DNA from: Octopus bimaculoides
Lineage: Eukaryota
Assembly: GCF_001194135.2 (NCBI RefSeq)
Contig: NC_069003.1
Location: 25,288,936-25,352,935, forward strand
DNA: 64,000 nucleotides
Reading direction: 5' to 3'
Shown in pieces: positions 3,155-27,654 of the stretch. Every line of letters starts with the position of its first letter. Positions within the stretch are counted from its first letter, which is position 1. The translations under genes were made by a program, and so were the position numbers. The notes under the pieces were generated by a model. The model saw only the letters and a program-made list of their open reading frames with translations. It had not been told where the DNA came from and searched no databases.

Positions 3155-3285
3155 ATGAAGTTTGCCATGTGGAAGAAATCCTCCATGTGGATTTTATTTG
3201 GAGGAATGGTGATGTTTTTCCTGTCATTAAGCACTTGTTTCGCCTATCTACTGGCCGGTGTCTACCACCGGTGGCAACTCGACAG
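3155..3285 (+). CDS. First coding exon of a type II membrane sulfotransferase-fold protein (cytosolic tail plus signal-anchor)
   Basis: Translates MKFAMWKKSS-MWILFGGMVMFFLSLSTCFAYLLAGVY-HRWQLD: short basic tail, then a hydrophobic helix. Preceded by acceptor tttgcag (3142) and ends ag|GTAAGT at 3286 in phase 2. That phase matches the acceptor at 16411, where ag+g gives Arg and the frame stays open. Intervening exons are not excluded. Confidence 0.8.
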
Positions 3286-4754
3286 GTAAGTTTCCAACTT
3301 GTGTACATTTACTTGTTTTCGGCTTCTTTGTGACTACCAGAACCTCAGTATGTTTTCTAATATATATATATATATATAAAGAATGGTGGCAGCTGATGAA
3401 GGAAACGTTCTCTATGTGGCCTGTGTGTTTTCTGTACTCTGTTTATCATTTTGTCCACGTTTTGTTTTGCATTGTCCTGTACCCAGATATGCATCTATAT
3501 ATACAGGTAGATGTAAGTATGTATATATGCATATACTCATTTATTATTTATATATATGTATATATATATATATATGGCATAGCTGATTCAAGGACTTTGA
3601 ATTTTTTATGTTTTTCTCCTCCAATTAACAACTCAACACTAACATACTTTGCATTCAGTTTAATATGCAATCTTTCCTGTATAGGAAAACCTGCTGACAT
3701 TCGTAAGTTTTTAATATATAGTCCTTTACTAAGGCGACGAGCTTACAGAATATGCTTAGTGGCATTTCGTCCGTCTTAAATTTCTGAGTTCAAATTCCGC
3801 ATTTTTTGCCTTTCATCCTTTCGGGGTCGATAAAATAAGTACCTGTTGTACACTGGAGTCGATGTAGTCGTCTTATCCCTTCCCAAAATCTCCTGCCTTA
3901 TGCCAAAATTTGAAACCTATATATAGTCATTTACCGTTACAGAACACGAGCAAACTTAAAAGGTGGCACAGAGATTTCATACCGTTAAAATATATATATA
4001 TTAATTTTTCTGGTTTTAATTGCTGGACTATGGCCCTGCTCGGTCATACTACCATCGAGGTTTCCCTCCCAGTTGACCCTAGCTCTCTCGGATCGACCTC
4101 GAAAAACCAAATTGACCTCGTCGTGAAGGGAGATAACCATTTTGCTTGATCTTATCTGACCCGGGACGAAACGATGTAAAAAGACAAATACATTCCAAGA
4201 TAGATATGGGCAAAATGCTGAAATGCACACGCACACACATGCTGTTTTGCCTCAGATCAATCTTTATGTATAGACAGTCCACCCGTAACTAACCTGTTGT
4301 TTCAATGGAACATTAGATAAGCTTCAACTGTCGGCTACCTTACCCAATGTCTCATTTTTTTTTTTTGACGGTGCTAGGCTATTTCTAATTGACCGAACGA
4401 TCTCGACGCACACACATCGACTGACTTCAGCTCTACATAATTCTTCACCATTTTTAACCATCGTCGTAAGTTTAGGACTTTTAGAGGTTATGTTTTATGG
4501 TATGATGCATTTCCTATCGCCAACTCTTTGCAAGTCGCTCTTTACAATGCAGTCTATGCAATTAGTTGACTTATTGCTTAAAGAGATAGTCATAGCTTGA
4601 ATGCCTTAATGCTAAACAATCAAATGGTCAAAGCAAGTCTTAGAGCTGTCACTTGTCCCGAATATATTGCAGAGTGACATGATTTTTGTCCTTGGGTAGC
4701 AACTGTTATGTGCTTCAGTTGACAAGAATTATAATTAAAACGAAAGATAGCCCT

Positions 4755-5167
4755 TATTTGCTTACCCTTAGAAAGTGTGAAAAACGGCTTCAAACTTTGC
4801 TTTTGTTACATTTATTCAAACCCCCAAACAATCCTCTCAGCACATGGCTATGATGCTCCCCCACTACTCCTGTTCATGATCAGAGATGCACATATTGTCG
4901 GCCACTAAGGGACCTGCTCTAGTGGTTATGGTCAAGTAACTAACAAGCAAATCTGTGGTATTGAGCAGAATATTTGCTATAACAAGATTTCTGCTTCAGC
5001 AACTCAGCACTGAATCTGTCTGAAATGTAATGGAAAATAGGTCAGTTTTAAAATATTGATGTCCAGGTGACAAAAGCAAAGTTTGAAGGGAATAGTAGTC
5101 ATTTCCTTTAATTTCTAGACAGAAGTAAATAGGAATTTTACACTTACTAACCAAAGACAAAAAAAGA
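4755..5167. mobile_element. About 410-bp dispersed repeat with internal 22-bp inverted repeats; second copy at 58399-58830
   Basis: Colinear similarity between the two copies over their full length; cttcaaactttgcttttgttac (4788) is inverted at 5067-5088. Confidence 0.75.
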
Positions 5168-5858
5168 TTTAATTTTCTTTTGATGTTATTTAACTGTTGA
5201 ATTCCTATGTTTCGAGTCATATCGAAGGAATGCCTGAATGAATCTGTTTGCATAATTAAGTAGTGGCTATATTCATTTCCCCCCCATTTTAAGAGATTAG
5301 TTTAAATACTTTAACACAAGGATTTTAATACAATGCATTTATTGTCCGTGCCAGTATAAGAATTACTCAGTCTAATAAACCAAGCATCTAACATTAGTTT
5401 TTAACCTGTTTGGAAATGGATCCACCTCAGCCAACCTGAGAACTTTTATCAGCTTGAAAGAGTGGTGCAGATTCCCTATATATAATTGTCTAGTTTGCTT
5501 TATAGAGTATAGCTGTTCTGAAACTTAGTTGCTGTTCAAATTAACAAACGATCATTAGTATAACATTATTCAATGTCTTCCTTTTCTTAAACTATTTCAA
5601 GTCTTTGAAGGAAACTTGGTTGCTATTTCTGATTGTTCCAGCTACTATGTAGGTTGAATAATGGTAGTTTCTAAGTGCACTAGATTTTGTTTTCATGTTC
5701 CACAAAAAGCTAGTTCAATTGGTAGATGGTAGAGTCCATATGGCTATAAGCCACACTGAGGTACTAAAAGACCCAGACACCATTCTACAATTACATCTCT
5801 TCATGAGTAAATGGGGGTGCTTCTACCAGCTTAGAAAAAAAATAATGGAGCTCCTTAA

Positions 5859-6077
5859 CTCTTTAGCATTTCTACTGGCTATATCCAACCCAAATATTCT
5901 TCCTGTTTTATATCCAAATTAGCCAGATCTGGCTTCTTATACCTATCCTAGAATGCCATTCCTAAACTAAAGAGATCTCATCATTGAAATCTCAAAGCTA
6001 CAAAAGAACACATGTAATTCAAAATAATGTAGATATATAAGCATTCTATTTGATAGGGTCATCTGACTGCTAAAGGG
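5859..6077. mobile_element. piggyBac-like MITE (TTAA TSD, CCCTTTAGCA-type TIR); related copies near 8408, 16150, 36436-36615, 40874-41091, 56492-57126, 61770-61973
   Basis: TTAA-ctctttagca...tgctaaaggg-TTAA, with internal sequence shared among copies. Confidence 0.8.
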
Positions 6078-6228
6078 TTAAATAAACCTATATAAATTCT
6101 AAGGAGAAGGTTATTGTAGCTAGAAAACCTCTGATCATAGATCTGATCAGTAGTTAAACAAATTTGAGCCAATTTAGAGTCAAACCTCCTTCAAACTACA
6201 TCAGCTGCAACAAGATGAATTTAAGCAT

Positions 6229-6760
6229 GTCACACCGAGGATAATAGAAGTCTCCAGAATATAACATCTGATACGGTCTTTTGTTCAGCGTAGAAGTAAA
6301 CAGGAAAGTCTTGGTTAGAGATGGGTGAAATGTGTCCAAAAATCTCCTCTTTGGTCTTGGGTTGATGCCATGAAATGTTTTGAACCTTCATGAGAGGCTT
6401 TGTGTATGTACCATCAAGGCAATCTTGAAACTCCTTCTTCATGGTCTGGGTGTTGACTTTCTAGAGAAGGTGGCTCTCTACTGTCATTAGGAGGGCCAGC
6501 TTTGTTGACTTTGAGTTACTTGATTGCCAGATGTTTTGAAGCTTGTTACAGGCACCCTAGGCTTGTCTCTTGCATGTCAGAAAGTCTTTCTTTCTGTCTC
6601 TTGCATTGAGACCTGAGGTACTTAAAGTTACTTATCTCCTTGAATTGTGTGCTGTTAGAACAATTTTGCAGCTGGCTTTCATCTTTACTGTTGGTCGTGT
6701 ATTCCATATTCTTTGCATTGAGAGACAGACCAACTTTGACTGCAGCATTCTCAAGGGATA
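6229..6760 (-). mobile_element. Decayed RTE-like LINE, C-terminal part of the reverse-transcriptase ORF
   Basis: Minus-strand peptides ENAAVKVGLSLNAK...NFKYL and LDGTYTKPLMKVQNISWHQ...EEIFGHISPIS resemble the RTE-type post-RT region; contains stops and frameshifts. Confidence 0.7.
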
Positions 6761-8104
6761 TTAACTAGTTTTGTGCATCACACAGTTGATGAAATATGAA
6801 GGGAAATATTATCAAGATAGACAAGGACATTGAGATACTGGATCTGCTAGCATCTTGATCTCTTCTGCTTATAATGGTGAGAGCTTTGGCTTATATGGGG
6901 GTCAGAACTTTGCCTGAGGATGTAGTCCTCAATTGTCACAAAGAGAAAAAGTAGCTGGGATGTCTCCTTGGAGGATACTGGCAGTCACAAATTCTCTAAG
7001 TTGGATCATCATCATCATCATCATCCATTTTCCATGCTAGCATGGTTCAGATGGTTTGATCAGAGTTGGTAAGCAAGAGAGCTGCACCAGGTTCCGGTCT
7101 GATTTGGCTTGATTTCTATGGCTGGATGCCAACCACTTTGCAGAGTGTGTTGGGTGCTTTTTTTTATGTGACACTCTCACTTATGCTTACCATATTTTAC
7201 TGTTCTAAGAGGTGAAGGCATCATTGGAGAATGTAATTGATGTTTTCACCAAAGATTCTTTCCTATGTGCTTCCAAACATTTTCTATTGACTGATATCAA
7301 ATTAACTCCCTTACTTACTTTTTAAATCTTCAGCACCCTCTACAGGGAGACTTCATCGACTAATTGCATGAATAACATGTAATAACCTGCAAAACTCTGA
7401 CAACCAACAGCATCGACAAACTAACAAGAAATCTTCTTCATGGTCTCTCCAATAAGCTCCCTTTCCGGCACCACACAAAAAGCATTCTTGCTGGTTCCAC
7501 ACAAATGCACCCATGCAGGTGCCACATGCAAAATTCCCCAATGCACTTTGTAAAGTGTTTGGCTTTAAGAAGGGCATCCTACTGTAGAACTCATGCCAAA
7601 ACAGAATTGAAGCCTGGGCAGCTCTCTAATGGGTCAGCTCCTGTCAAACTGTCCAACCTATGCCAGCATAGAAAACAGACACTAAATGATGATGATTACA
7701 GCAAAGGAAACATGAGCAAACACTTGATCAATGACAGTCCAGTCATGACCCTCTGGAAGTCATTAACTAACAGCGTCAATCTCACTGATCTCAGCTCAGT
7801 CTTTCTAGGATTGCAAAGGCCATGGTTACTACTCTCTTTGTTTGTCCAAACCTCTAGGTTTGGAGGAAGATACTCGTGGCAATGAATTTATAGACAAATC
7901 CATAATTGATTGATATTCTGTAATTTTTCTCCACTTTGACTGATTTGGTGGAAATCTTCACCACCACTACAGCTGTGCAGTATTTATTCCTGTCGGTTCT
8001 AGATCCTTTTATATCAGTGTTTCTCAGTAATTTTTTTTTTACCTGTGGACCCCTTTGATTCCTGTTTTATTCAGATGGACCCTCCTAGCCATTTGATGTT
8101 TTAA

Positions 8105-8379
8105 GCCGATGGACTGGCTCCTGTGCAGATGGCACGTAAAATACACCATTTCGAGCGTGGCCATCACCAGTACCGTCTGACTGGCCCTCGTGCCGGTGGC
8201 ACATAAAAGCACCCACTACACTCTCGGAGTGGTTGGCATTAGGAAGGGCATCCAGCTGTAGAAACTCTGCCAAATCAGATTGGAGCCTGGTGTAGCCATC
8301 TGGTCCACCAGTCCTCAGTCAAATCGTCCAACCCATGCTAGGATGGAAAGCGGACGTTAAACGATGATGATGATGATGA
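8105..8379 (+). mobile_element. SINE family B (central GAGTGGTTGGCGTTAGGAAGGGCATCCAGCTG, V-domain-like; tail CATGGAAAGCGGACGTTAAACGATGATG)
   Basis: Near-identical copies at 13305-13463(-), 13681-13969(+), 34219-34510(-), 50745-51086(+), 63310-63525(+), plus many degenerate ones; (GAT)n tail. Confidence 0.85.
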
Positions 8380-9006
8380 TAGTATTAGAAACTGTATAAA
8401 AAGAATTTACCCTTTAGCATTCAGACTACTTTTTCAAATATAATGCTTATTCAATTTTTTTTTTTTTATTAATTATGTATTATCTTGTACCTTAGAGATT
8501 TTGAAGATGTAATTGTTTATTTTTAGAATGACATTGTAGGGTAGGTATGAGATGCTGGATATGGCGAGTTTGAGCATAAAAGAGATAGACTATTTGGGCC
8601 AGATATGGTTAGTTTACGATATTTTGTGTATTGTAGAAGTATAACCAATTTATTGCACAAATTTTGCCACCAAAATCTTATGTGTACCTCCAAGGATCAT
8701 ATGGATCCTAGTTATGAACTACTGCTCTAAGTGGATGCAGCGCTTCTGAATGGATGGAAGAGAAGCCAAAAGTTTTGTGCAATGGTTAATACATCCATCA
8801 TGGGTACAGAAAATGCAGGTTGACATCCTTTGGATAGCCATTGACCTTTTCACCATTCAAGGGGTTTTTAACCTAAAATACTACTTATTATTTCTAGCTG
8901 TATCCACTTCAAAACTAACTCTTAAAAATGATTAATTTCACATTTTCTCAGAGCTTCTACATTTTACATGCAGACAGACTGTCTTTACATGCAATATTAT
9001 GCAAAA

Positions 9007-9243
9007 CTGTTGTGTCTGGGGTGAGTCATTTTTTTTATTGTGCCTTAAAAATTAACACACTCACCGTTACAACTTCCACTTATTTTTATTTTCCTAAAAT
9101 TTTCGTTGCGTCTTGCAACCTTTTCGATAGTCTTGACACAACGAAAATTTTAGGAAAATAAAAATAATAAGTGGAAATTTTAACGGTGAGTGTGTTAATT
9201 TTTAAGGCACAATAAAAAAAATGACTCTCCCCAGACACAACAG
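9007..9243. mobile_element. Long palindrome / fold-back MITE (arms 9007-9112 and 9135-9243, 22-nt spacer)
   Basis: The arms are reverse complements with few mismatches; the ORF track shows near-identical peptides on both strands. Confidence 0.85.
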
Positions 9244-11637
9244 AATATGCTTCAACACACGAAATCACATAAAAAATCTTGCAAACCAAATCCAAAAACG
9301 AAATATTATACAAAACACTATTTGTTAAATGCACCGGTCTTGTGGGGCTAGACAGACCTGTTGNNNNNNNNNNNNNNNNNNNNNNNNNNNNNNNNNNNNN
9401 NNNNNNNNNNNNNNNNNNNNNNNNNNNNNNNNNNNNNNNNNNNNNNNNNNNNNNNNNNNNNNNNNNNNNNNNNNNNNNNNNNNNNNNNNNNNNNNNNNNN
9501 NNNNNNNNNNNNNNNNNNNNNNNNNNNNNNNNNNNNNNNNNNNNNNNNNNNNNNNNNNNNNNNNNNNNNNNNNNNNNNNNNNNNNNNNNNNNNNNNNNNN
9601 NNNNNNNNNNNNNNNNNNNNNNNNNNNNNNNNNNNNNNNNNNNNNNNNNNNNNNNNNNNNNNNNNNNNNNNNNNNNNNNNNNNNNNNNNNNNNNNNNNNN
9701 NNNNNNNNNNNNNNNNNNNNNNNNNNNNNNNNNNNNNNNNNNNNNNNNNNNNNNNNNNNNNNNNNNNNNNNNNNNNNNNNNNNNNNNNNNNNNNNNNNNN
9801 NNNNNNNNNNNNNNNNNNNNNNNNNNNNNNNNNNNNNNNNNNNNNNNNNNNNNNNNNNNNNNNNNNNNNNNNNNNNNNNNNNNNNNNNNNNNNNNNNNNN
9901 NNNNNNNNNNNNNNNNNNNNNNNNNNNNNNTTTTTTTTTTTTTTTTTTTTTTTTCGTCTCCTCAACCCCATCTTACTAGTGATGTTGCTGTCGGTAACTA
10001 TATAGTACGGTAGCGATGTTGATGGTGTTATTGTTGTTGTAGTAGTGTTGCTGTCAGTAATATAGTGGTGGTGGTGGTGGTGTCAGCCGAGACAGGGATA
10101 CATTCCTCTATAATCAGTTCTATTTGGCAGAGGAGAGAGAGAGCTAAAAATGACATGCAGTGTCTGAAATGTTTGACACTAGCTCTATAATAGATGTCAA
10201 CACTGAATAGCTACCGGGGTGGTTTAGGGAGCTACGTAGAGCTGTGGTGGTGGTGGCGGCGATGTAGTGAAGCTATCAGCTTCCACTCCGACTTCCCTAC
10301 CCCCGCTTCACTCTCTTTTTCAGTTTTTTTTTTGTCTTTTCGTCTTGTTTTTTTTTAAGTATTGCTGATAAACTTCCCGAGGGTGGAAGTGAGAGAGTGC
10401 TCTGTGTGAGAGTGTCAGTGCCAAAAACTTTTATTGTAGACATGCTACTTGCCAACCCTTCTCCCAACGTTTTTTTTTTTTTTGACGGGGGGAGGGGGGT
10501 TGCAATTTTTTTTTAAATTTTTTTGTGTACTCACCGCCTCCATCAACCTCCTTTATGTCATCGTGTCACTACCACTACCACGACTACTAAACTACTGCGG
10601 TTTACGTCTGTCTTGCTTTCTCTCTCTCTCTCACTGCCTGCCATACTAAGCCTTGTTTGACAGGTCCTCGGTAAACAACCACATTCACATCTGGCATTCG
10701 CGAACCCCCCTCCCCCTCTTTCACCTCACTCTCGTAAATACACACTTAACTGTTGAAAAAATATTAATGTGGGTTATATAGGTTTACGTAAGCATGCAAC
10801 TATAAGAGATTTTAAAACTACACGTTTACACATTCTTTCTCTTTTTCTCTATCGCACCTGTACACACACACACACACACACACACACTCTCTCTCTTTCT
10901 CCCTCTCTCTCTCTCTCTCTCCCCCCCTCTCTCACACACACACACACAAATGCCCCTTAAACACAATAGTATTGTCTCTCCTAAATCCTTGTAATCTACC
11001 CTCTTATTTTTATCATTTACTTGTTTCAATCATTAGACTGCGGCCATGTTGGGGCGCCGCCTTGAAGAATTTTTAATCGAATGAATCGACCCCATTCCTT
11101 TTCTTTTTTTTTTTTTTAGCCTGATACTTATTCTATTGGTCTCTTTGCCCAACTGCTAAGTTACGGATACGTAAACACAAACAAGTTGTGGTGAGGGACA
11201 AACTCACACACACACGGCAGGCTTCTCTCAGTTTCCGTCTACCAGAACCGCTCACAAGGCTTTGGTTGGCCCGAGGTTACAGTAAAAGACACTTACCTAA
11301 GGTGCCATGCACAGGGACTGAACCCGGACTGTGTGGTTGCGAAGCAATCTTCTGACCACACAGCCACGCCTACGCCTCGGGCCGACAAAAGCCTTGTGTG
11401 TGGATTTGGTTGACGGAAACTGAAAGAAGCCCATCATTTTATGTGTGTATGTGTGTACATATATCTGTGTCTTTGTCCCTCATCACTGTTTGACAACCAG
11501 TGTTGGTGTGTTTGCATCCCTGTATCAGCAGTTCGGCAAAAGAGACAAATAGAAATAAGTACTGAGGTTAATTCTTCGATGTGGTGCCCCAGCATGGCTG
11601 CAATGTAATGACTGAAACTAGTAAAAGCTAAAAGATT

Positions 11638-11668
<31 letters not shown>

Positions 11669-12097
11669 CAGTCTTGCTACATCTACACCCAACACCAAAT
11701 CTCTATCATATTTACCTCCCACCCAAAACCACTCTGCTGTATCTACTTTCCACTCACATCCATACACACATCCTACACAGTGTCTCTGTTACCTGTCAGC
11801 TTGTAGATGGAGAAGGAATTCCATCTGCATCTCGTACCATCTCCCAGCCTCAGCTGTAAATGAAATTGCCATCCTTCAGTACAACCACATTTTCTACTTT
11901 GGATGTTTTGTAAAACAAATCTTACACAAGTGAAATATGTTGAAAGGTAATACCAAAGTAAGATGCTATGAGCACATGAAAACAAACTTATTTTTTAGAG
12001 ATAGGTTGGGTGACATTCGAGGAAAGTTTGACTGCTATTTCTAACCACTTTGAATACCAGCATCGTTTTAAGACATTGTACTCTTTTATGTGTATAG

Positions 12098-12301
12098 CTC
12101 TTTTACTTGTTTCAGTCATTTGACTGCGACCATGCTGGAGCACTGCCTTTAGTCGAATCAAATCGACCCCAGGACTTATTTTTTGGAAGCCTAGTATTTA
12201 TTCTATCGGTCTCTTTTACCGAACCGCTAAGTTACGGGGACGTAAACACCAGCATCGGTTGTCAAGCGATATTGGGGGGACAAATACAGACACACACACA
12301 C

Positions 12302-12335
<34 letters not shown>

Positions 12336-12493
12336 GATGGGGCTTCTTTCAGTTTCCGTCTACCAAATCCACTCACAAGGCTTTGATTGGCCCGAGGCTA
12401 TAGTAGAAGACACTTGCCAAACGGGCCACGCAGTGGGACTGAACCCAGAACCATGTGGTTGGTAAGCAAGCTACTTACCACACAGCCACTCCC
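12098..12493 (-). mobile_element. SINE family A (tRNA-derived head, CCTTGGGCAAGTG central block, internal CA/TA microsatellite, (AGTAAAAG)n tail)
   Basis: Minus strand begins GGAGTGGCTGTGTGG (A box)...GGTTCAGTCCC (B box). Other copies at 11021-11377, 18135-18525, 20946-21337, 30581-30935, 33905-34207, 45350-45700, 46381-46773, 59987-60387 and many fragments. Confidence 0.9.
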
Positions 12494-13969
12494 ATGCCTA
12501 GCTGCATTACTCTCGCGCATGCAAAAATGTGATCATATGTAATGTACATACACACTTAACACATGTACAATTATGTTAATAGTCTTCACACCTGCAAAAC
12601 TGCAATTGCGCATAATCGCAATCAACACCTGCTTTTACGACTATTATGCTCTGAAAAGTGGTTGCCCGGGAGGGGGCGAGGTCTGTTTTTGTGTTGTTCT
12701 TTTTTAAACTGTTACGCATGGCTTTTGCAGACTCTGCTCTGCAAGGCTGTTGGGATGGCACACAGTTAACATTCTTGAACATTTGTTGCAAGGCGACAGC
12801 TGCAGGGAGGAATAACTAGTTGCAGCGCAGGGGAGAGGATGCCTGTGTAGGTGGTGAGAGGAAAGATGAGTGAGTGAAAGGTGCCTGGTTGTATGTGGCA
12901 CGAGACCAGCTGTAGCAGTTGGTAGTTGAGAAAGGAGATAACACACTGGAGGAAGGAGTCAAGTATGTTGGTAAACAACTTAATGCTAATTAGGCAAGCA
13001 GTCTTTATTTGGATATGGTCCAACGTTCCCTCTAATTCTTTTGTTTTGTGTGTGTGTGTGTGTGTGTAGAAATTTGCTTATGCTTGCTCTTTTACTTGTT
13101 TCAGTCATTTGACTGCAGCCATGCTGGAGCACTGCCTTGGAGGGTTTTAGTCGAACAAATCAACCCCAGCATTTAATTTTTTAACCCTAGTATTTATTCT
13201 ATCAATCTCTTTTACTGAACTGCTAGGTTATGGAGACATAAACACATCAACACCAGTTGTCAAGCAGTGATGGGGGAACACACATATACATAGATATACA
13301 TATCATCATCATCGTCGTTTAACGTCTGCTTTCCATGCTAGCATGGGTTGGACGATTTGACTGAGGACTGGTGAACCAGGAGGCGACACCAGGCTCCAAT
13401 CTGATTTGGCAGAGTTTCTACAGCTGGATGCCCTTCCTAACGCCAACCACTCCGAGTGGTTATATATNNNNNNNNNNNNNNNNNNNNNNNNNNNNNNNNN
13501 NNNNNNNNNNNNNNNNNNNNNNNNNNNNNNNNNNNNNNNNNNNNNNNNNNNNNNNNNNNNNNNNNNNNNNNNNNNNNNNNNNNNNNNNNNNNNNNNTCAT
13601 ACCACACACACACACAAGCATGCTCGTGTAAAATGAATATACATATATCTATAGACACACGCACACACATATACATACATATTCGAGCGAGGTTGTTGCC
13701 AGTGCCGCTGGACTGGCTCCTGTGCAGGTGGCACGTCAAATACACCATTTCGAGCGTGGCCGTTGCCAGTACCGCCTGACTGGCCCTCGTGCCGGTGGCA
13801 CGTAAAAGCACCCACTACACTCTCTGAGTGGTTGGCGTTAGGAAGGGCATCCAGCTGTAGAAACTCTGCCAAATCAGATTGGAGCCTGGTGTAGCCATCT
13901 GGTTTCACCAGTCCTCATTCAAATTGTCCAACCCATGCTAGCATGGAAAGAGGATGTTAAATGATGACA

Positions 13970-14086
<117 letters not shown>

Positions 14087-14369
14087 ACAGACTTCTTTCA
14101 GTTTCCGTCAACCAAACCCAGTCACAAGGCAAGAAGACATTTGTCCAAGGTGCCACATAATGGAACTGAACCTAGAACCATGTGGTTGGGAAGCAAGCTT
14201 CTTACCAATGCGCGAATTTTATTTTGCATATCTAAAAGAATAATCACCTTCATTTAAAAAAATTCAATTTCACCTTTAAAATTATTTGTGCACGTTTTTT
14301 ACTCCCATGCACTAGATGCAAAATGTGTGATGTCACCTAAGAAGTCTGTATGTGTGTATCTGTAATCTT

Positions 14370-14690
14370 GGCACGTGGCTTAGTGGTTAGAGCATTTGGC
14401 TCACAATCGTAAGGTCGTGAGTTCAATCCCCGGCAATGTGTTGTGTCCTTGAGTGAGACACTTTATTTCATGTTGCTCCAGTTCACTCAGCTGGCAAAAA
14501 TGAGTAGTACCTGTATTTCAAAGGGGCCAGTCTTGTTGCACCTTGTGTCACACTGAATCTTCCTGAGCACTACATTAAGGGTACACATATTTGCGGAATG
14601 CTCAGTCACTTGCACGTTAATTTCATGAGCAAGCTGTTCCGCTGATCGTATCAGCTGGGACCCTCACCGTCATAACCAATGTAGTGCTCC
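14370..14690 (+). mobile_element. tRNA-headed SINE sharing its 3' half with SINE family D
   Basis: Head TGGCTTAGTGG...GAGTTCAATCC; from about 14510 it aligns with the 3' half of 39891-40275. Confidence 0.75.
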
Positions 14691-14974
14691 TACTACATCT
14701 GTAGCCCAAGCTAAAGTATGCGATCTGTAGTTTATTGTGGGGTTTCAGTTCAGCTTTGTAGAGTATTTGGTAGCTAGTGTGGAGAGGGCCAAAGACATTT
14801 TTGATCTGAAGAAGGTGGCTAGCTTATGGCTGTTGCCAGTAGTGATTGCCACTGATGGTGAGGCCCAGAATTTATAGTGATATTGAGGGTTCTAGTTTGT
14901 TGTTGTTCATGTTCAGTGGATGACTATGATGTATAGTGATATCTTGTGAAGGCCAGAAATTTGTAAGTGTAAAA

Positions 14975-15375
14975 AAAACCAACCTCTTCGACTGTGATAA
15001 ACTTTTTACATGAATTGTTTGCAAGATTTGGCATCCCAGACAAGATAGTGTCTGACAATGGAATACAATTTGTGTCTACCGAATTTTAAAAGTTTTGTGA
15101 AATGTTCGTGGTAGAACATGTAACTACTGCACCATATCATTCCCAGATCTAATGGACAGGCAGAATGCTTTGTCGATACCTTCAAAAGAACCGTTAGAAA
15201 ATCAAATAAGGAAGTCATGGATGAAGTAGCTCTACAACAATTTTTAAGAGTATACTGTGTGACACCAAATCTGAACACACCAGCAGATAGCTCACCAGCA
15301 GAACTGATATTTGCAAGGAAAGTAAAATCAATCTTTGATAAATTGCTACCAGGCAAGAAAAGAAAAAGTGCTAGG
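14975..15375 (+). mobile_element. Ty3/Gypsy LTR retrotransposon integrase fragment (pseudogenic)
   Basis: FLHELFARFGIPDKIVSDNGIQFVSTEF*KFC...TTAPYH/(frameshift)RSNGQAECFVDTFKR...SPAELIFARKVKSIFDKLLP. Confidence 0.85.
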
Positions 15376-16411
15376 GAACTGCTAAGTGACGCGGGACATA
15401 ATAAACACACTAGCATCGGTTGTCAAGCAATGCTAGCAGGGACAAACACATACACACACACACACACATACATATATACGACGGGCTTCTTTCAGTTTCC
15501 GTCTACCAAATTCCACTCATAAGGCTATAGTAGAAGACACTTGCTCAAGATGCCACGCAGTGGGACTGAACCCAGAACCATGTGGTTGGTAAGCAAGCTA
15601 CTTACCACACAGCCACTCTTGCATTATGCAATTAATTTTTTTTTTTTTTTTTTGCTTTCCACAATGCAGCAGTGTAATCAAATCTTTCCATGGGTCTACC
15701 TTAAGTGGTATTTGAAAACATGCTAAAGAGAGAGTCGCGATGTTATTGCTCATCGTACTAGAAACAACAGCAAATCCCACCTCGAATTACCCTAACATCT
15801 TTAGAAAGATTAAAAGAATGACATGTTGGATATTGTAGACAGGGATATACAATACTGGAAAAAGTACTGTGATGGTCATGGCTAGAAGGCCTTCGTTCAT
15901 AGGTTTACTTGATCAGTACTGGTTTAATTCTACCACTAATCTTTCAGCTATGAAAGGAGTATGTCGAAGTAAGAAGAATTGTGCCCCTTAATTCAGAAGT
16001 ACAACAGGACAGCTTTAGCAAGTTTTATGTAGCACCTTTACTGTAGAAGTAAGAGTAAAGCCCATCTTGTGTCTTTACTATACAAATGTCTTAATTGTTG
16101 AAGCTGTATTAAATATAATGACTTGTTTGGAAGAAAGAAATTATTTTAAACCGGCCATATCCAGCCAGAATATTTTACAAGTTTTATGTTCAGATCGGTC
16201 AGATCTGGTCTCTCACACCAACTCTACAATACCATTCTAAAAATTAGTGGTTACCTCATCAAAATCTCAAAGCTACAAGACAATGTATACCTCATTCAAA
16301 ACTATGTGAATAAAGAAGCTTTACTTTTGACAGAATAATATGAATGATAAAAGGTTAATAAAACAAATTTGAAGAACATTTTCTAAAACTTTTTACTTTT
16401 TTTATTTTCAG

Positions 16412-17471
16412 GAAAGAATCGGTTGAATTACAAAACATAATGGTGTCTCTGGGCCGGCTGAAAGACAACTCCAATGTATATAAAGTCCTGCAAGAGGAAC
16501 TAATGGAATCTACAGTTCAAAGAGTATTTCCATGGTTACCAAAGAACAACACTTTGCCAAACTATTTCTTTCACCAGCAAACCAGAAAGTCTCCAGCCAG
16601 TTACCAACACAGCAATATCGTCTTTATGACAAATACTCATGACAGTAGCAATTCATTCTCAGATTGTCTTCATGACATAGCCACTGACCACTCGTTGCCC
16701 ATGTCTCCATTCATGTCCATTCGCAACCGGAGGGCATGGGAAGAGGCTGAGGGCAACGAGCGCATGCTCCATGACCGGATTAAGATCCACCATGGAAATT
16801 ATGCCTTTGGCATGTGCGAGAATCTCACCAGTTCATGCTCGTATTTTTTAATGCTCCAAGATCCAATAGAGCGAGCCATCTCGACCTACCATTACTGTAA
16901 GGATGCCATCAGAGATGAACTCTGCAGTGTAGTGAATGCCAACAAAGTTTCCGTCCATGATTGGGCAGTCCACCAAGGAAGTTTGTTCTTCCGTCAGTTA
17001 TTGTTCAAACCTGACTTTTGCGACATAGAAGTGAATAGTTCTCTCATAGCAGTCCAAAATATTAACAAGCTCCCCTGTTGGTACAAGCAAAAGCTTTATT
17101 TTGATTCCTTATCGAATGCTGATGTTACAGAAGCTCTCAACTATGTTGGAAAGCATCTTGACCAGTGGTTTTCAGTTGTGGGTCACGTCGATGACTACTC
17201 CGCCTCCGTCAAAATGTTTGAATATGTTTACCGGTTACCATTTTCTAAATGTTATGATTCCTCTCTGGCCTTCCAAGAAGAACCTAGCAATAATAACAGG
17301 GCATACACAGTAGATCAAAATGAAGAAACTTTAGACAAGCAAGAAGTGTTCCTTCTAAAACAAAGTGTCACTGTTCAAAAAGCTTTACATGCCGACTACA
17401 GAATTTATAATGAAGCCAAAAAGTTATACCAAATTCAAAGACAGGTTTTATTTAATCAAATAGGACATTAA
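16412..17471 (+). CDS. Large terminal coding exon, sulfotransferase-fold lumenal domain (HS2ST/UST/Gal3ST-like), possibly catalytically degenerate
   Basis: Acceptor tttattttcag at 16411 opens frame KESVELQNI into the 343-aa ORF. Contains NIVFM-TNTHDSSNS at the 5'-PSB position, YFLMLQDPIERAISTYHY (3'-PB-like R-D-P-x-x-R-x-x-S) and C-terminal ADYRIYNEAKKLY helix; stop TAA at 17469-17471. Confidence 0.85.
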
Positions 17472-19905
17472 TGAGATGTTTGATAACAATCTGATCATTG
17501 ATGAAACCAAGCAACAATTTGTATATAGACTGTATTGTGTATATAAAAATCAACAACTGTACATCTGTATAAAGTATTTAAAAAGATTTTACATTCTAAA
17601 ATATTTATTTGTTTAGAATTTTTTGAATATTTTGTGTTTTCTGTTTTTAATTAAATTCCCTTAAATTCTGTTCTTTTATTAACTTCCCCACTGCCTTTTA
17701 TCCATGTTCCTCTAAATTCTTGAAAAACCAATTCATCACTTTAAAAATCCTCAGGATCACTCTACTTTTAGGGTCTTGTCTGTGATAGGCAAGTTTTCTC
17801 AAAGCTAAAGTAATTCCATGAAATGGGGCAGTAGCAATTTGAGGATGATTCCAAGGTTCAAACTGAAATATTGGGTTTGTGTACTGCGTATAGGACAACA
17901 ATTGGTAAAGTCGTTAGAGCATCAGATAGAATGGTTTGTGGTACTTTTTCAACGGTTTGAGTTCAGATACCACTGAAACCAACGTTGTTAATCACCCCAC
18001 CACCACCACCACCACTACCACCATCCATACCAAAAAACAAAAACAAAAGGACAAGTAAAGTAGCAGTACAGAGCAGTGTATTAACAGGTTTGTTAGAGCA
18101 TTGGATCAGATGCCTTGTAGGATCTGTTCTGGCTCTCTTTACTCTTTTACTCTTTTACTTGTTTCAGTCATTTGACTGTGGCCATGCTGGAGCACCGCCT
18201 TTAGTCGAGCAAATCGACCCCAGTACTTATTCTTTGTAAGTCTACTACTTATTCTATCAGTCTGTTTTGCCGAACTGCTAAGTTACAGGGACGTAAACAC
18301 ACCAGCATCGGTTGTCAAGCGATGGTGGGGCGACAAACACAGACACACAAACACACATACATATATACGACGGGCTTCTTTCAGTTTCCGTCTACCAAAT
18401 CCACTCACAAGGCTTTGGTCGGCCCGAGGCTATAGTAGAAGACACTTGCCAAAGGTGCCACGCAGTGGGACTGAACCCGGAACCATGTGGTTGGTAAGCA
18501 AGCTACTTACAACACAGCCACTCCTGTGTGTAATTTCTTTTTTTTTTTTTTTTTTTTTTGTGGAATACAAGATATGAACTTGTTAGTATGCATTTTAAAC
18601 AATTTTAGGACGTTTGTTGCCTAAAATTTAGTTTCCAGTATCTCACTGCCTGACATACAAGAACATTGCACCTTCTTGTATGCCAGGCATTGCATCACTG
18701 TGTCTCTTCATATGCAAGATATGTTGCTATATTTAAGCTATATTCAGAATAGATGTATGACAGCAGGCTGGCAACTCTTGAGGTGTGTTGCTAAATAAGA
18801 TACAAAAGGATGATCAACAAAGATAAATGGAGGGTGCTTACGTGTATAGATATACTGTCTGCAGTAAAATTATTAAAGATATTCTGTTCAAGTAGTGCAT
18901 TTGTTTGTGTTGTATTCCAGTTCTAAGTGGAAATTACTTATTAAGAATGAGGAATTCTGCTGAAAGGTTAAAAATAAGGTGTGAGATTTTAATGTAAATG
19001 ATATGGATTTCTCACAAAAGCACAATAACTCGAATTTAAAGGAGAGGTCATCATCATCATTTAACATCCGTTTTCCATGCTGGCATGAGTTAGATGGTTT
19101 GACCAGAGCTGGTAAGTTTGAGAGCTTCGCTAGGCTCCAGCCATGTTTCAGTTTGGTCTCTATGGCTGGATGCCCTCCCTAATGCCAACCACTTTATAGA
19201 AGTGTACTAGATGCCCTTTTATATGTCATTGGCATGAGTACTCTTTTACGTATCATTGGCAGATGTGCCCCTATTGTGTTACTGGCACTGGCCACAACCA
19301 CAATTTTACCTAGCTTGATGTCTGTTAAGCACTGCAAATCACCAGGAATCTTGGTCACTTGCCATCACTTCCATGAGACTCAACAACCAAAGATCATAGA
19401 TCAACACCTCATCCCACGTCTTCCCGAGTCTACCTCTTCCACAGGTTTCCTCCACAAATAGAGATCAGCACTTGTTTACATAGAGTTGTTTATATCAACT
19501 TCTGTACATGACTGGTTCTTTATCAAATCTGGAAAGATAAAAGGCAAAATTGAACTTAACATCATAAGGGACTTTTTTTTTTTAGTATTTTGTCAGAGTT
19601 TCAAGGAAAGTGGGAGTAAGTTATCCTCATTGGAGACCTGGCCTAAATGCTTGCAACAGACTGAAGTCAACAGCACCCAGGGAGGAAATGAAGATGCTAA
19701 ACTTGACAGGGGAACTAATTCTGCCACCCAGCAACTCAGAATACACAAAAGAGTCACCAGATATTACAAGGTGTCACATCTAATGTGTTGACTATTCCAC
19801 CAATCTTCTACCCTTTTTCAACCTTGAAAGGCAAAGTTAACTTCAGTAAAATTTAGACTCTGAGCATAGGCAACTAGAACAAATACTGCTGATATGACTG
19901 ATTAA

Positions 19906-22153: not shown

Positions 22154-24545
22154 TATTTGTTTATTCCGTGATTTACAAGTGTTTCAGAATGTTCGATATA
22201 ATAAAATGATGAGAAGTACCAAAAAAAATTCATTTTAATCATGACAGCTATTTCGATGTCATGATACACAAACAAGAAGCTTGAAAAACATGGATTTTAA
22301 AAAAAATAAATTTAATACGAATTATGCGTTTTAGAATGTAGGATATAATAAACTGACGAAAAATACCGAAAAACAAATTTCTTTTTAAACGTGACAGTTA
22401 TTCTGAGCTGGTAATATCATAAGGAATTGCCATAATAAAGTATATCCTTCCAAGTGGTAGTGGTATCAGTTACATATGGCTGCTATTTCTAGCACATCGA
22501 TGCTCTCTTGTCTGGCCACACGTTTTCGCGGGTGAAATGATATAGTAAACCATACTAGAAGGTTCTATCTTTAAGGTTGTCATCTTACCAGCATTCATTG
22601 CATTAGATAAATAACTAGAAATAAGAGTCACGTGGTTATTCTTTTCGTGTTGTGCTGGCAATAACCAGTTCGTGAAACAATTAAAATTATGATGGCCTGG
22701 CGGTTTAATCAGAATCAAGCAATACTTCCAGCTGCTGACTACGAGGAAACTAATAATGCTCCGTAAGTTACTTCCCCTTTACCATTGTAAACATCACATA
22801 CACATGCATACATTTTATTCACACACACACACATATACTCTTTACTCTTTTACTTGTTTCAGTCCTTTGGCTGCAGCCGTGCTGGAGCACCGCCTTTAGT
22901 CGAGAAAATCGACCCCGGGACTTATTCTTTGTAAGCCTAGTACTTATTCTATCGGTCTCTTTTTGCCGAACCGCTAAGTTACGGGGACGTAAACACACCA
23001 GCATCAGTTGTCAAGCGATGGTGGGGCGACAATAACACATACATATATATATATGGTAATCATCAAGTTTAGGGGAATAAAAAAAAATTTAAAAAAATAT
23101 TCAAGGGAAGTAACTGAACGTCTTACCAGTATTCTCCGTACATCTCTGTTTATAAATAAATCACACACNNNNNNNNNNNNNNNNNNNNNNNNNNNNNNNN
23201 NNNNNNNNNNNNNNNNNNNNNNNNNNNNNNNNNNNNNNNNNNNNNNNNNNNNNNNNNNNNNNNNNNNNNNNNNNNNNNNNNNNNNNNNNNNNNNNNNNNN
23301 NNNNNNNNTATATATAAATATATATATAGGATCTTTCTGATTTGACGGGCAACACTTGTTTTCTTAACGAAACACTTTCAAACTTGGGATACTGGTAGAA
23401 TGTATCATATAAAACATCTTTTTCTCTTAGCTTTCTTAACAAAAATTTATATATTGCAAGTTATTTCATGTTAAAGTTGTATTTCTGTAATTTCAACCAA
23501 TCACTGTCGTCTATATATATATATATATACACACACACATATACGACAGGCTTCTTTCAGTTTCTGTCTACCAAATCCACTCACAAGGCTTTGGTCGGCC
23601 CGAGGCTATAGTAGAAGACACTTGCCCAAGGTGCCACGCAGTGGGACTGAACCCGGAACCATGTGGTGTCCACAAAGTCTGGGTACATAAGGATTAATAT
23701 ATACTTTAAGATCGCCGAAATAGTAATTGCGATCTTTCGATACTAATCCTTTTTCTGTCATCTCTTTATTTACATCAATTCGGCAGTCTCCGTAAAAAAA
23801 TGTTTTGTTAGGCAAGTGGGAAAGGACGCGAAAGAGATAGATCGCCCCCTGGATATATATAAACATGAATTTTAATATATATATTACACACAAGACGGAG
23901 AGCTGACAGGATCATTACCACGCTCAGCAGGATTTCGTTCCTCTTTATGTTGAGTTCAAATTTCGCCGAGATCGAGTTTACTTTTCATCTTTTCGGGATC
24001 GATAAAAGAAGTACCAGTTGAGTATAGGGGACAATGTAATCAACTTAATCCCTCCCCGGAATTTCTAGCATTGTGCCAAAATTTTAAACCAACGTGTGGG
24101 GGGTGGATAAGGTTCCTAGTTTTAAGGGTGTCGCGTAAAGCTTGGTTGGAGGCCCAACGTTCCAAGATCTTTTACAAGGCTTAGAAAAACTGAAGGGTCG
24201 CTGCAATAAGTGTGTGAATCTGAGAGCAGAATATGTTTAATAAAATCATAATGAACTGATCCTCCTGTATTCTTTTTTACCCAAAGCCAAGAATTTTTCA
24301 GCCCCCACCCCCTTACAGACCTCGTATATATTATACACACAGGAGCCAACGAGAGGTAGAGCTACATCGAGCAGGAGTTATTAAACTTTCTTACAATTCT
24401 TGACCTACAAGAGGTTGCTTAATATCTTCCATAGCCCCATTGTTCCTTTTGAATGACTTCGGAAGATGCCAATAGGCTTGATTTCTTCTTGGAAAAGAAC
24501 GAGAAGGAAAATCATGAAAGATTTTATTATATTAATATAAAGAAA

Positions 24546-25524
24546 GGATCTTTGTGATTTGACGGGCAACACTTGTTTTCTTAACGAAACACTTTCAAAC
24601 TTGGGACACTGGTAGAATGTGTCATACAAAACAACTTTTTCTCTTAGCCTTCTTAACAAAAAATTATACATCGCAAGTTATTTCATGTTAAAGTTGTCGT
24701 ATTTCTGTAATTTCAACCAATCACTGACGTCTATTCAGCTGAATACAGTCAGTGCTTGCCGGTCATAAAAATGTTATTCCCTGTGACATTTCATCCGGTT
24801 TAATCGTAATTTATACGCATATATTGTTTATATAATAAATTACGCTGTGCGTATCTGTGTGTATATTTTTCCCATAACNNNNNNNNNNNNNNNNNNNNNN
24901 NNNNNNNNNNNNNNNNNNNNNNNNNNNNNNNNNNNNNNNNNNNNNNNNNNNNNNNNNNNNNNNNNNNNNNNNNNNNNNNNNNNNNNNNNNNNNNNNNNNN
25001 NNNNNNNNNNNNNNNNNNNNNNNNNNNNNNNNNNNNNNNNNNNNNNNNNNNNNNNNNNNNNNNNNNNNNNNNNNNNNNNNNNNNNNNNNNNNNNNNNNNN
25101 NNNNNNNNNNNNNNNNNNNNNNNNNNNNNNNNNNNNNNNNNNNNNNNNNNNNNNNNNNNNNNNNNNNNNNNNNNNNNNNNNNNNNNNNNNNNNNNNNNNN
25201 NNNNNNNNNNNNNNNNNNNNNNNNNNNNNNNNNNNNNNNNNNNNNNNNNNNNNNNNNNNNNNNNNNNNNNNNNNNNNNNNNNGTCAGAACTAACGGGGAT
25301 TAATACCATATACACCGTCACAGCACTGACTGTATTCAACTGAATAGACGTCAGTGATTAGTTGAAATTATCGAAATAAGACAACTTTTAACGTGAAATA
25401 ACTTCGAATACAAAATTTATTATCTGTTCTATACCACAAAATATACAAGTATACGAAGTTTGAAAGTGTTTCGGTACCAAAAACACTACATAAAAAAATG
25501 TTGACCGTCAAATCACAAAGGTCC
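24546..25524. mobile_element. GGATC-ended fold-back MITE, subfamily 1 (contains N-gap 24878-25281)
   Basis: Left end GGATCTTTGTGATTTGACGGGCAA; right end TTGACCGTCAAATCACAAAGGTCC; internal inverted block AATTTCAACCAATCACTGACGTCTATTCAGCTGAATA. Left half of another copy at 23329-23512; inverted left arm at 25525-25618. Confidence 0.75.
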
Positions 25525-26764: not shown

Positions 26765-27654
26765 AACGATTCTCCCAGCTCGTCGCCATCCCTTCAGACT
26801 AATATTAACAGACTCAGAAAAAGTATTGCACAATCAAATTATCATTAAGTGCAAAGTGAATAATAAATTCAGGAAACACCAGCTGCAACTTTATGATAGA
26901 CTGTTCAAAGTCAATAGAAACTGCCGACAAGAAACTTAACGAGCAAACTAATCTCCTCCAAATACGAATTGCGAGCTGCTTGTCAAGATTTTCGTTACCG
27001 GGGGAAAAAACTTGAATTCAAAACCGTCAATTGCAAGTGTGCACTAAAAGCGGATGTATCGCGCAGTATTGTAACACTTGAGTTTATAGGTCGTTGTTTG
27101 TTAGTATTAGTTAGCAGCATGTTGTCCCATAATAAACCAAATACGAACTTTGTTGAAATACATTTTGTTGTTGTTAGAGTAATTTACATTTACACACAGT
27201 TTTCTAGGTGTTATCAGTAGTGTATTGCAGAAAGCTAGAAGCGAATACAGCTGTAATTAAATTACGGATAAAAATGATAACTGTCCCGTGGGAGGAGAAA
27301 ATAGTGTTTGCTCGTCCTAGAGGAAGAATTTCTTTTTACCCTGGGCTGAATTTCAGTGAAGGAAAACTTGACGTTGCAAAGGCTGAAGGGCCACTTTCTG
27401 GTTGATCCTGGTGAGCTTTCGCTTTATAAATACAAACACTCGGGAACTTGTAGAACCTTGTAGAATATTCTACTATATGTCGTGATATATTTCTACAAAC
27501 CTATTAATTAATAACCAGGATACATCACCTGACTTGAGTGTGGTCTTATATTGGCAACTGAAACTGCTAGGCTTCGATTTTAGGTCTCGATACAGTATTA
27601 AAGGCCATACCATGAAGGTTATAAAAGCCCTACTCCAGGATGACCTAGAGTAAT

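Follow-up and report, generated by a model that had tools for sequence, protein, structure and literature searches.

The gene and its locus

The window, a stretch of 64,000 nucleotides from a draft assembly of Octopus bimaculoides with many N gaps, carries on its plus strand a gene of two coding exons (Table 1). The first coding exon was located with tblastn using the Octopus sinensis protein P0001 as the query, and its ATG and GT donor are visible in the sequence. The spliced coding sequence of 1191 nt encodes a protein of 396 amino acids, which shares 95% identity with Octopus sinensis LOC115223527. The signal-anchor follows a short, basic cytoplasmic tail, the predicted topology is that of a type II membrane protein, and the luminal domain contains three N-glycosylation sequons. 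The position of the intron after the anchor is the same in O. sinensis, Argonauta and Solemya. The VPS11 gene lies downstream in the same orientation both in the window and in Argonauta, and this common neighbourhood argues for the orthology of the octopus and Argonauta genes. Scans for tRNA genes and Rfam families across the window returned no matches.

Table 1. Coordinates of the gene and of its donor-site features (window positions)
Feature	Position	Strand	Remarks
Coding exon 1	3155..3285	+	ATG to GAC AG/gtaagt; encodes MKFAMWKKSSMWILFGGMVMFFLSLSTCFAYLLAGVYHRWQLD and two bases of the next codon
N-terminal hydrophobic signal-anchor, approximately residues 11-37	3185..3265	+	Read directly from the translated sequence
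Single intron, ~13.1 kb, gt...ag	3286..16411	+	Includes assembly gaps and interspersed repeats
Coding exon 2	16412..17471	+	Stem helix and entire luminal sulfotransferase-fold domain, 352 aa, then TAA stop
Degenerate 5'-phosphosulfate-binding (PSB) strand-loop-helix NIVFMTNTHDSSNSF	16614..16658	+	Family consensus xIVFLHxxK(A/S)GGTTx
T73, codon ACA	16629..16631	+	Replaces family His of F-L-H, 88-93% conserved; cephalopods T/T/S/V/V
H76 (CAT) and D77 (GAC)	16638..16643	+	Catalytic Lys/Arg position and helix N-cap
Degenerate 3'-phosphate-binding (PB) motif LQDPIERAIS	16854..16883	+	Family alignments, profile comparisons
Q149, codon CAA	16857-16859	+	Replaces family Arg, 94% conserved; Solemya codon CGA
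H160, cephalopod-only invariant His	16890..16892	+	PB helix, three residues past S157
H258, cephalopod-only invariant His	17184..17186	+	End of central strand 253-258 (WFSVVGH); hydrophobic in 97% of family

Family membership and fold

The octopus protein has no match in Pfam, even at an E-value of 10, and searches of the PDB with this sequence alone (phmmer) or with an eight-sequence profile gave chance matches only. These failures are what one would see if the protein had no homology to sulfotransferases, or if its motifs had been read in the wrong register, in which case the residues in question were never there to lose. We give this explanation next to no weight, as it is effectively refuted by a larger profile, by a structure search and by a profile-profile comparison. 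Detection of HS2ST and HS6ST by sequence required a profile of 102 family members, which matches HS6ST3 (5t03) and HS2ST (4ndz/3f5f) at an E-value of ~1e-4 with the motifs aligned. The Sulfotransfer_2 family (PF03567) is matched by 70 of the 102 relatives at E <= 0.01 (best 3.6e-8), and the nearest motif-intact relatives score 15-20 bits for it, the gathering score being 22 bits. Finally, an hhalign comparison of the five cephalopod sequences with 28 Lys-type sequences (probability 100%, E-value 2.3e-73) runs without gaps through both motifs.

An AlphaFold2 model has a pLDDT of 91.5 and a pTM of 0.89. In a Foldseek search, its top match is HS2ST with PAP (4ndz; E-value 2.4e-5, probability 1.0, TM scores 0.44/0.53), followed by HS6ST. 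The model thus predicts the alpha/beta architecture of sulfotransferases, with a parallel sheet at the centre, the strand-loop-helix of the PSB and the strand-turn-helix of the PB, in agreement with the maintained fold postulated in the preliminary description. In the PSB element, NIVFM would form the strand, TNTH the loop and the residues from D77 onward the helix, which is the canonical arrangement.

The preliminary description had taken Gal3ST as the comparator and called the protein Cys-rich, and neither point held. The Gal3ST family (PF06990) does not match the octopus protein and matches only 8 of the 102 relatives weakly (best 1e-5), against 70 for PF03567, so membership in it was rejected; the nearest characterised relatives are HS2ST and HS6ST. 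The luminal domain contains eight cysteines, exactly the eight that are conserved family-wide and that probably form four disulfides, and hence the octopus protein is not unusually rich in them. Neither inaccuracy affects the conclusion.

The family alignment was made with MAFFT and comprises 157 proteins. Word-indexed homologue searches returned only 7, 9 and 16 proteins, and with these searches, whose sensitivity is limited, no second family member was seen in Octopus or Argonauta.

Donor-site motifs in cephalopods

The Lys or Arg of the PSB motif keeps the 5'-phosphosulfate in place and stabilises the transition state, and the Arg of the PB motif binds the 3'-phosphate. Sulfotransferases are defined by this PSB Lys/Arg, the Ser of the PB helix and the architecture of the sheet (PMC11625862, a review); in HS2ST, the PSB residue is K83 (PMC6081452). 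Both motif peptides were present on the plus strand where the preliminary description had put them (16617-16890), to within one or two codons. It had reported a PSB loop with an acidic residue and no Lys, and a PB motif with Gln for Arg, and the family alignment bears out both: H76 takes the Lys position of the loop, D77 follows at the helix cap, and Q149 stands opposite the family Arg. The hhalign comparison sets T73/H76/D77/S79 opposite H/K/A/G and Q149 opposite R, and the alignment of the family profile to HS6ST (VIVFLHIQKTGGTTF; YITMLRDPVSRYLS) and HS2ST gives the same register, so the three alignments agree with the motif register originally assumed.

O. sinensis, Argonauta hians, Sepia esculenta and one more cephalopod carry the same substitutions, which are thus not assembly errors. 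H76 is invariant in all five cephalopods. The helix N-cap at position 77 is D/D/D/E/Q in cephalopods and Ala/Ser/Thr in the family, and position 149 is Gln in cephalopods with Glu in P0004. In octopods, G79 is also altered (Ser). The Solemya codon at position 76 is CGY (Arg), from which CAY is separated by one CpG transition. The PSB loop, elsewhere the most conserved stretch, varies among cephalopods (T/S/V, T/S/P, D/E/Q, S/A, S/G, N/S/A/M). D150, P151, R154 and S157 of the PB motif are retained, S157 being present in all five sequences. The H140-G-H142 segment of HS2ST aligns to H127-G128-N129, with H126 also present, and the family has no fixed His there. Basic residues specific to cephalopods include R104 and K178, either of which might extend into the donor pocket.

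Besides H76, H160 and H258, a fourth histidine, H182, is invariant in cephalopods, and the four occur in only 0-2% of the other 97 aligned family members. Three of them belong to elements of the canonical donor pocket, being placed in the PSB loop, on the S157 face of the PB helix and at the C-terminal end of a central strand. H76, H160, H258 and perhaps H182 might therefore form a new site for a metal or another ligand, possibly a pH-dependent one, in a re-purposed PAPS pocket that would confer a new receptor-like or enzymatic activity. We consider this very unlikely: the histidines match no known motif, and with five sequences a constraint peculiar to the lineage is hard to tell from common descent. 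The related proposal of a coleoid-specific, neofunctionalised receptor, lectin or enzyme with a rebuilt His-lined donor pocket, the only family member left in cephalopods, is in our opinion improbable.

Motif loss across the family

The canonical motifs F-L-H-x-x-(K/R)-(A/S)-G-G-T and R-D-P-x-E-R-x-x-S are found in approximately 120 of 156 family proteins. Among the 152 other proteins of the family, position 76 is K in 95 and R in 25, and position 149 is R in 123. Both positions are basic in 118 proteins, both are non-basic or missing in 30, and only 4 are discordant. The loss of one basic residue is closely tied to that of the other throughout the family, a coupling that the preliminary description had not foreseen, and about one fifth of the sampled proteins (30/156) have neither. 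The Lys/Arg of the PSB and the Arg of the 3'-PB are both preserved in homologues from bivalves (Solemya, Saccostrea), nemerteans (Lineus, Tubulanus), hemichordates and echinoderms; the joint losses span several lineages, namely the cephalopods and those to which a gastropod, a scallop and a brachiopod belong.

In a neighbour-joining tree with 100 bootstraps, the cephalopods are not joined with support to the other degenerate lineages, and because its deep nodes have less than 30% support, the tree does not decide between shared and independent losses. The stem branch of the cephalopods does not exceed the other branches in length. Five of the 63 class-conserved family positions, including H73, K/R76 and R149, are changed in all five cephalopods, in which the eight cysteines and the other family motifs are intact. 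The enrichment of losses inside the two motif windows is marginal (Fisher one-sided p = 0.055).

Selection, expression and age

The pairwise dN/dS is 0.116-0.22 between the window gene and O. sinensis and 0.10-0.16 for a Sepia-type pair. A motif-intact Solemya pair gives similar pairwise values of 0.08-0.15. For octopod versus Sepia and Octopus versus Argonauta, dS is saturated and gives no estimate of dN/dS. Purifying selection has thus continued after the loss of the motifs, on pairwise values of 0.10-0.22 in cephalopods.

The coding sequence of P0003 is found contiguous and intron-less in more than 100 RNA-seq contigs, including those of Sepia esculenta larval transcriptomes, and the Sepia orthologue is a spliced transcript. 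The degenerate state was fixed before the split between octopuses and cuttlefish and, as it is common to both groups, it is ancient and maintained.

These findings bear on the suspicion, nourished by the N gaps of the draft assembly and by the missing Pfam match, that the gene is a decaying pseudogene or that its motif differences are artefacts of assembly or annotation. The two-exon reading frame, of which the preliminary description had called the exon-2 ORF intact, is unbroken and has canonical splice sites, the substitutions recur in the four other cephalopod sequences, which derive from separate assemblies and transcriptomes, dN/dS is low and the AlphaFold2 model is of high confidence. 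Together these observations effectively refute the suspicion, which retains a negligible probability.

A candidate pseudo-sulfotransferase

The protein combines clear homology to active enzymes with the replacement of key cofactor residues, which is one mark of a pseudoenzyme. The most probable explanation is that the octopus gene is a candidate pseudo-sulfotransferase, whose PAPS site has been disabled and which is kept for a non-catalytic role. Its candidacy is well supported, and two of the comparisons favour the original proposal outright: motif-intact relatives keep both basic residues that the five cephalopods lack, and dN/dS is at the low level of the motif-intact Solemya pair. The product would be a secretory-pathway protein with type II membrane topology, and we infer that it resides in the Golgi. 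Its luminal domain would retain a fold like that of heparan-sulfate 2-O- and 6-O-sulfotransferases, with a site altered by four changes: the PSB Lys/Arg to His, the phosphate-binding helix cap to an acidic or amide residue, loss of the motif His three residues upstream, and the 3'-phosphate-binding Arg to Gln/Glu. Judging by these residues, PAPS binding and sulfate transfer have most likely both been lost in the octopus protein. Since purifying selection nevertheless persists, we infer a non-catalytic function, which would rely on the preserved scaffold and the acceptor-side surface. The protein could bind a glycan or another acceptor-like ligand, or it could partner another Golgi enzyme.

Several points tell against the dead-enzyme reading. 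The invariant His76 may be positively charged at the pH of the Golgi, so some PAPS binding could remain, and S157 and R154 are retained, as is a His at 126/127, close to where the catalytic His of HS2ST aligns. Moreover, the losses are, as given above, only marginally enriched in the motif windows, and the word-indexed searches in which no intact octopus paralogue appeared are of limited sensitivity. An alternative reading is an active PAPS-dependent enzyme, in which a protonated His76 would replace the Lys/Arg in the acidic Golgi lumen and Ser157 and other residues would hold the 3'-phosphate. The invariance of His76 among variable neighbours, the retention of S157, R154, D150, P151 and H126, and a purifying selection equal to that in intact relatives would all be in accord with it. 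The nearest relatives have Arg for Lys and Stf0 likewise has Arg instead of Lys at the PSB position (PMC11625862), which indicates that this position tolerates some change.

We nevertheless regard sulfotransferase activity as rather unlikely. Four pocket positions are altered together (H73, K/R76, the helix cap, now acidic, and R149), and G79 as well in octopods. The PSB loop has become variable among cephalopods, and position 149 drifts between Gln and Glu. The family-wide co-loss at positions 76 and 149 is what would be expected if donor binding had been given up entirely. No active sulfotransferase is known to have a His at the PSB Lys/Arg position. A review of these enzymes gives only Lys and Arg there (PMC11625862).

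For kinases, phosphatases and proteases, the occurrence of pseudoenzymes is well established. Our literature searches found no description of a pseudo-sulfotransferase of the Golgi carbohydrate-sulfotransferase type, and searches on LOC115223527 and on pseudoenzyme, sulfotransferase and PAPS combined returned nothing specific. The octopus case belongs to an uncharacterised metazoan family that Pfam scarcely detects. The losses in several of its lineages amount to a natural, replicated experiment on what becomes of a sulfotransferase scaffold after sulfation stops, and the residue changes supply a concrete set of revertants for testing. For cephalopod biology, the case flags a conserved secretory-pathway protein that annotation pipelines have left 'uncharacterized'.

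Comparison with known systems

The best structural and profile matches are HS2ST1 (3F5F, 4NDZ) and HS6ST3 (5T03) of the Sulfotransfer_2 family (PF03567). The octopus protein shares with them the predicted type II topology, the same order of the strand-loop-helix and strand-turn-helix elements, the D-P-x-E-R-x-x-S core and the C-terminal W-F-x-V-x-G strand. However, the identity is only 10-17%, the octopus protein is not matched by Pfam, and it has His at the position of HS2ST K83 and Gln at that of the 3'-PB Arg. The family's own P-W-L-P-K-N-N-T-L-P-N-Y-F, eight cysteines, G-S-x-F-F-R-Q-L-L and P-C-W-Y-K are absent from the profile-aligned regions of HS2ST and HS6ST.

Much closer are the motif-intact relatives, which are 34-40% identical to the octopus protein across the luminal domain: Solemya velum ScPMuIL_007733, the 'uncharacterized protein' entries of Lineus, Tubulanus and Saccostrea, and the 'Sulfotransferase' entries of Saccoglossus, Ptychodera and Holothuria. 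They share its cysteines and family motifs and, in Solemya, also the two-exon structure, but keep H-x-x-(K/R)-(A/S)-(A/G)-G-T and R-D-P, which the cephalopod proteins do not. The other degenerate lineages are the Lymnaea stagnalis CAL1539147 group, the Argopecten irradians XP_069106196 group, Lingula anatina LOC106166348 and a 'QHEPGGY / THPLDR' group. As in cephalopods, the basic residue of the PSB loop and the Arg of the 3'-PB motif are lost jointly in an otherwise conserved scaffold, whereas the replacement differs: the Lymnaea group has a deletion in the loop, the others E/D/S.

SULT4A1, an orphan sulfotransferase, is a conserved protein of sulfotransferase fold in which no sulfotransferase activity of the classical kind has been found (PMC8803991). 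Unlike the octopus protein, it is cytosolic, a vertebrate protein and a member of Sulfotransfer_1, the two being related only by superfamily fold. Cosmc (C1GALT1C1) is a glycosyltransferase paralogue that has no activity of its own and serves as the chaperone of T-synthase. It belongs to a different fold and family, and its client is an active paralogue, of which the word-indexed searches showed no intact counterpart in octopus, but as a type II protein of the secretory pathway that arose from a glycan-modifying enzyme and was kept for a non-catalytic role it may be a functional analogue of the octopus protein.

Gene structure and setting

The 343-residue open frame in the window continues upstream as far as a polypyrimidine tract and an AG dinucleotide. 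The closest database protein is LOC115223527 of Octopus sinensis (396 aa, 95% identity), and a tblastn search with it located a separate first coding exon. The two exons splice to a coding sequence of 1191 nt that encodes 396 residues, and the frame is intact, as the preliminary description had stated.

Features of the window (64,000 nt)
Feature	Position	Strand	Remark
Coding exon 1	3155-3285	+	tblastn with LOC115223527; ATG start, AG|gtaagt end
Splice acceptor AG	16410-16411	+	follows polypyrimidine tract
Coding exon 2	16412-17471	+	defined by acceptor and ORF
343-aa ORF	16440-17471	+	ORF reading
NIVFMTNTHDSSNSF	16614-16658		5'-phosphosulfate-binding (PSB) motif
H76	16638-16640	+	invariant in cephalopods
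LQDPIERAIS	16854-16883		3'-phosphate-binding (PB) motif
H160	16890-16892	+	invariant in cephalopods
H182	16956-16958	+	invariant in cephalopods
H258	17184-17186	+	invariant in cephalopods
VPS11 (PEP5) orthologue exons	43323-43427, 47035-47229, 48146-48205, 49255-49329, ~59700-60048	+	one exon: Pfam TPR_PEP5_VPS11, 3e-16
Interspersed ~400-bp repeat	12098-12492, 18140-18539, 46385-46773, 59987-60393		84-92% identity to copies in O. sinensis locus L001
N runs (assembly gaps)	9364-9930, 13468-13596, 23169-23308, 24879-25282, 30450-30580, 44968-45349, 48556-48628, 58951-59641

The product of exon 1 is a short basic tail and, after it, ~25 hydrophobic residues, from which a type II membrane topology is predicted. 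Exon 2 supplies a long stem helix together with a globular domain that has eight cysteines and three N-x-S/T sequons. This layout, in which the anchor is in exon 1 and the entire luminal domain in exon 2 with a single long intron between them, is common to the cephalopods and the protobranch bivalve Solemya velum (exons at 3001-3180 and 26987-28078 of its locus, L010), where the intron is in the same position. The Argonauta hians protein (P0002, locus L002) carries a ~30-residue Asn-rich low-complexity insertion, NNNNNNNYNNLNNNNDYNSNDNNNNNIYNNYNN, at residues ~330-375, in a loop for which the octopus model itself shows disorder (pLDDT <50, residues 298-303).

VPS11 follows the sulfotransferase-like gene on the same strand, with exons from ~43.3 kb to 60 kb of the window, and the gene order is the same in Argonauta, which supports orthology. 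The spacing to VPS11 is ~4.5 kb in A. hians versus ~26 kb in the window. Non-repeat stretches align to the O. sinensis locus at ~88-91% identity, which points to two distinct species of one genus. The ~400-bp repeat is present there in many copies and in both orientations and is hence probably SINE-like; it gives rise to spurious ORFs with LLFYLFQSFDCGHAGAPP. The N runs show the window to be a draft scaffold.

Fold and motif register

As a single query, the window protein had no Pfam match and no sequence match in the PDB. An exhaustive profile search, on the other hand, revealed a large family (1380 proteins at E <= 1e-3, 115 at E <= 1e-30), which is unnamed in databases and whose lophotrochozoan branch is mostly below Pfam thresholds. 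Used as a profile, an alignment of 102 of its sequences (A2) matches HS6ST3 (5t03, E 1.1e-4) and HS2ST1 (4ndz/3f5f, E 1.2e-4), with VIVFLHIQKTGGTTF and YITMLRDPVSRYLS lined up with the two family motifs. The AlphaFold2 model of the exon-2 protein is confident (pLDDT 91.5, pTM 0.89), and its top Foldseek match in the PDB is HS2ST with PAP (E 2.4e-5, probability 1.0, TM 0.44/0.53), followed by HS6ST. The proposal of a maintained fold is thereby borne out. The choice of Gal3ST as comparator is not: Pfam Sulfotransfer_2 matches 70 of the 102 A2 members (best 3.6e-8), Gal-3-O-sulfotransferase only 8, and the nearest characterised relatives are HS2ST and HS6ST.

In the model, NIVFM forms a strand and TNTH a loop, with a helix from D77 on. 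Independently, when a profile of the five cephalopod sequences (A3) was compared with one of 28 Lys-type members (A4), the probability was 100% and E 2.3e-73, with no gaps across either motif; T73/H76/D77/S78/S79 fall opposite H/K/A/G/G, and Q149 opposite R. The register is correct. A wrong family or register is effectively refuted by this comparison, the A2 matches and Foldseek.

Changes in the donor-binding motifs

Both motif peptides had been placed to within 1-2 codons, and both are degenerate as described. The majority family motifs are F-L-H-x-x-K-(A/S)-(A/G)-G-T-T and R-D-P-Y-E-R-x-x-S-S-Y-x-Y-C. The nearest non-cephalopod relatives (S. velum, Saccostrea and the nemerteans Lineus and Tubulanus) have H-H-P-R-A-A-G-T, with Arg for Lys, and keep R-D-P. 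Active TPST also has Arg at the PSB Lys position. So does the active enzyme Stf0 (PMC11625862).

All five cephalopods (the window, O. sinensis, A. hians, P0003 from Sepia esculenta, and a further relative, P0004) lack both features and share the same differences, numbered here by exon 2: family His at position 73 (88-93%) is T/S/V, Lys/Arg at 76 is invariably His, Ala/Ser/Thr at 77 is D/E/Q, Gly at 79 is Ser (octopods only), Arg at 149 is Q/E, and Asp at 318 is S/N. R76H (CGY to CAY) and R149Q (CGA to CAA) each need just one CpG transition from the Solemya codon. Of 63 positions conserved by residue class in at least 85% of motif-intact members, only five (73, 76, 149, 241, 258) are altered in all cephalopods, although conservation at 76 and 149 is partly circular because the reference set was picked by motif state; the losses show only marginal enrichment inside the two motifs (windows around each; Fisher one-sided p = 0.055). 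All eight cysteines are kept, as are P-W-L-P-K-N-N-T-L-P-N-Y-F, G-S-x-F-F-R-Q-L-L, P-C-W-Y-K, W-F-x-V-x-G, L-P-F-S-K-C and D-Y-R-I-Y. Elsewhere in the family no stretch is more conserved than the PSB loop, yet it varies among cephalopods, and its model confidence is below that of the flanking regions.

A protonated His76 might stand in for Lys/Arg in a still active sulfotransferase; in favour are the invariance of His76 and the retention of S157, R154 and H126. We regard this as unlikely in view of the concerted changes at 73, 77, 79 and 149, of the drift between Q and E at position 149, and of the family-wide coupling of positions 76 and 149. Among 156 proteins with at least one of these positions aligned, both are basic in 118, both non-basic or missing in 30, and discordant in four. 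Such joint loss is what would be expected if donor binding had been given up wholesale. Besides the cephalopods, degenerate members comprise the Lymnaea stagnalis group (P0085/86/93/94/95/106; PSB loop deleted, PB motif M-Q-D-P), the Argopecten irradians group (P0019/P0024), Lingula anatina (P0023), a group with Q-H-E-P-G-G-Y / T-H-P-L-D-R, and P0119-P0131 and others. In a neighbor-joining tree the cephalopods form a clade (100%) with a stem no longer than other branches; its deeper nodes lack resolution, and the tree does not fix the number of independent losses.

H76, H160, H182 and H258 occur in 0-2% of 97 other aligned members, and three of the four belong to structural elements lining the donor pocket of canonical enzymes. 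These histidines would fit a re-purposed pocket, which we nevertheless consider improbable.

Maintenance, expression and proposed role

Purifying selection on the degenerate genes is comparable to that on intact ones: dN/dS, a check suggested in the preliminary description, is 0.116 (NG86) to 0.22 (YN00) for the window versus O. sinensis and 0.10-0.16 for P0003 versus P0004, against 0.08-0.15 for the motif-intact Solemya pair (P0005, P0006); synonymous sites are saturated in deeper comparisons. The P0003 coding sequence lies without intron on ~2-kb contigs of >100 RNA-seq assemblies, two of the runs belonging to published S. esculenta larval transcriptomes. In a decapodiform, therefore, the gene yields spliced transcripts. 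As it is common to Octopodiformes and Decapodiformes, the degenerate state is older than their split. A pseudogene or artefact is effectively refuted by the low dN/dS and the recurrence of the changes in five cephalopods.

The most probable explanation, in our judgement, is a non-catalytic protein of the secretory pathway. It would be a type II membrane protein, presumably of the Golgi, whose luminal domain retains an HS2ST-like scaffold with a disabled PAPS site and which most likely neither binds PAPS nor transfers sulfate. Database searches of limited sensitivity surfaced no further family member in Octopus or Argonauta, so the gene appears to be an orthologue whose catalytic activity was lost, and not a surplus copy. 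A non-catalytic function is therefore suggested, perhaps one that the ancestral enzyme already had, and candidate roles are acceptor-like glycan binding or association with another Golgi enzyme.

Comparison with known systems

Most enzyme families include inactive homologues, and a pseudoenzyme here is therefore no surprise in principle. In the literature we found no mention of the locus and no description of a pseudo-sulfotransferase of the Golgi carbohydrate type. The finding belongs to an uncharacterised metazoan family with recurring losses and is directly testable. Measured against active sulfotransferases, the window protein has the fold and the PB Ser, but lacks the PSB Lys/Arg, the 3'-PB Arg and a Pfam match above threshold. 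It resembles a pseudoenzyme whose ancestor was a carbohydrate sulfotransferase of the Sulfotransfer_2 type, and the original reading as a pseudo-sulfotransferase stands as a candidate. Cosmc may offer a functional analogy. A loose precedent is SULT4A1, described as a conserved protein of sulfotransferase fold without classical activity (PMC8803991).
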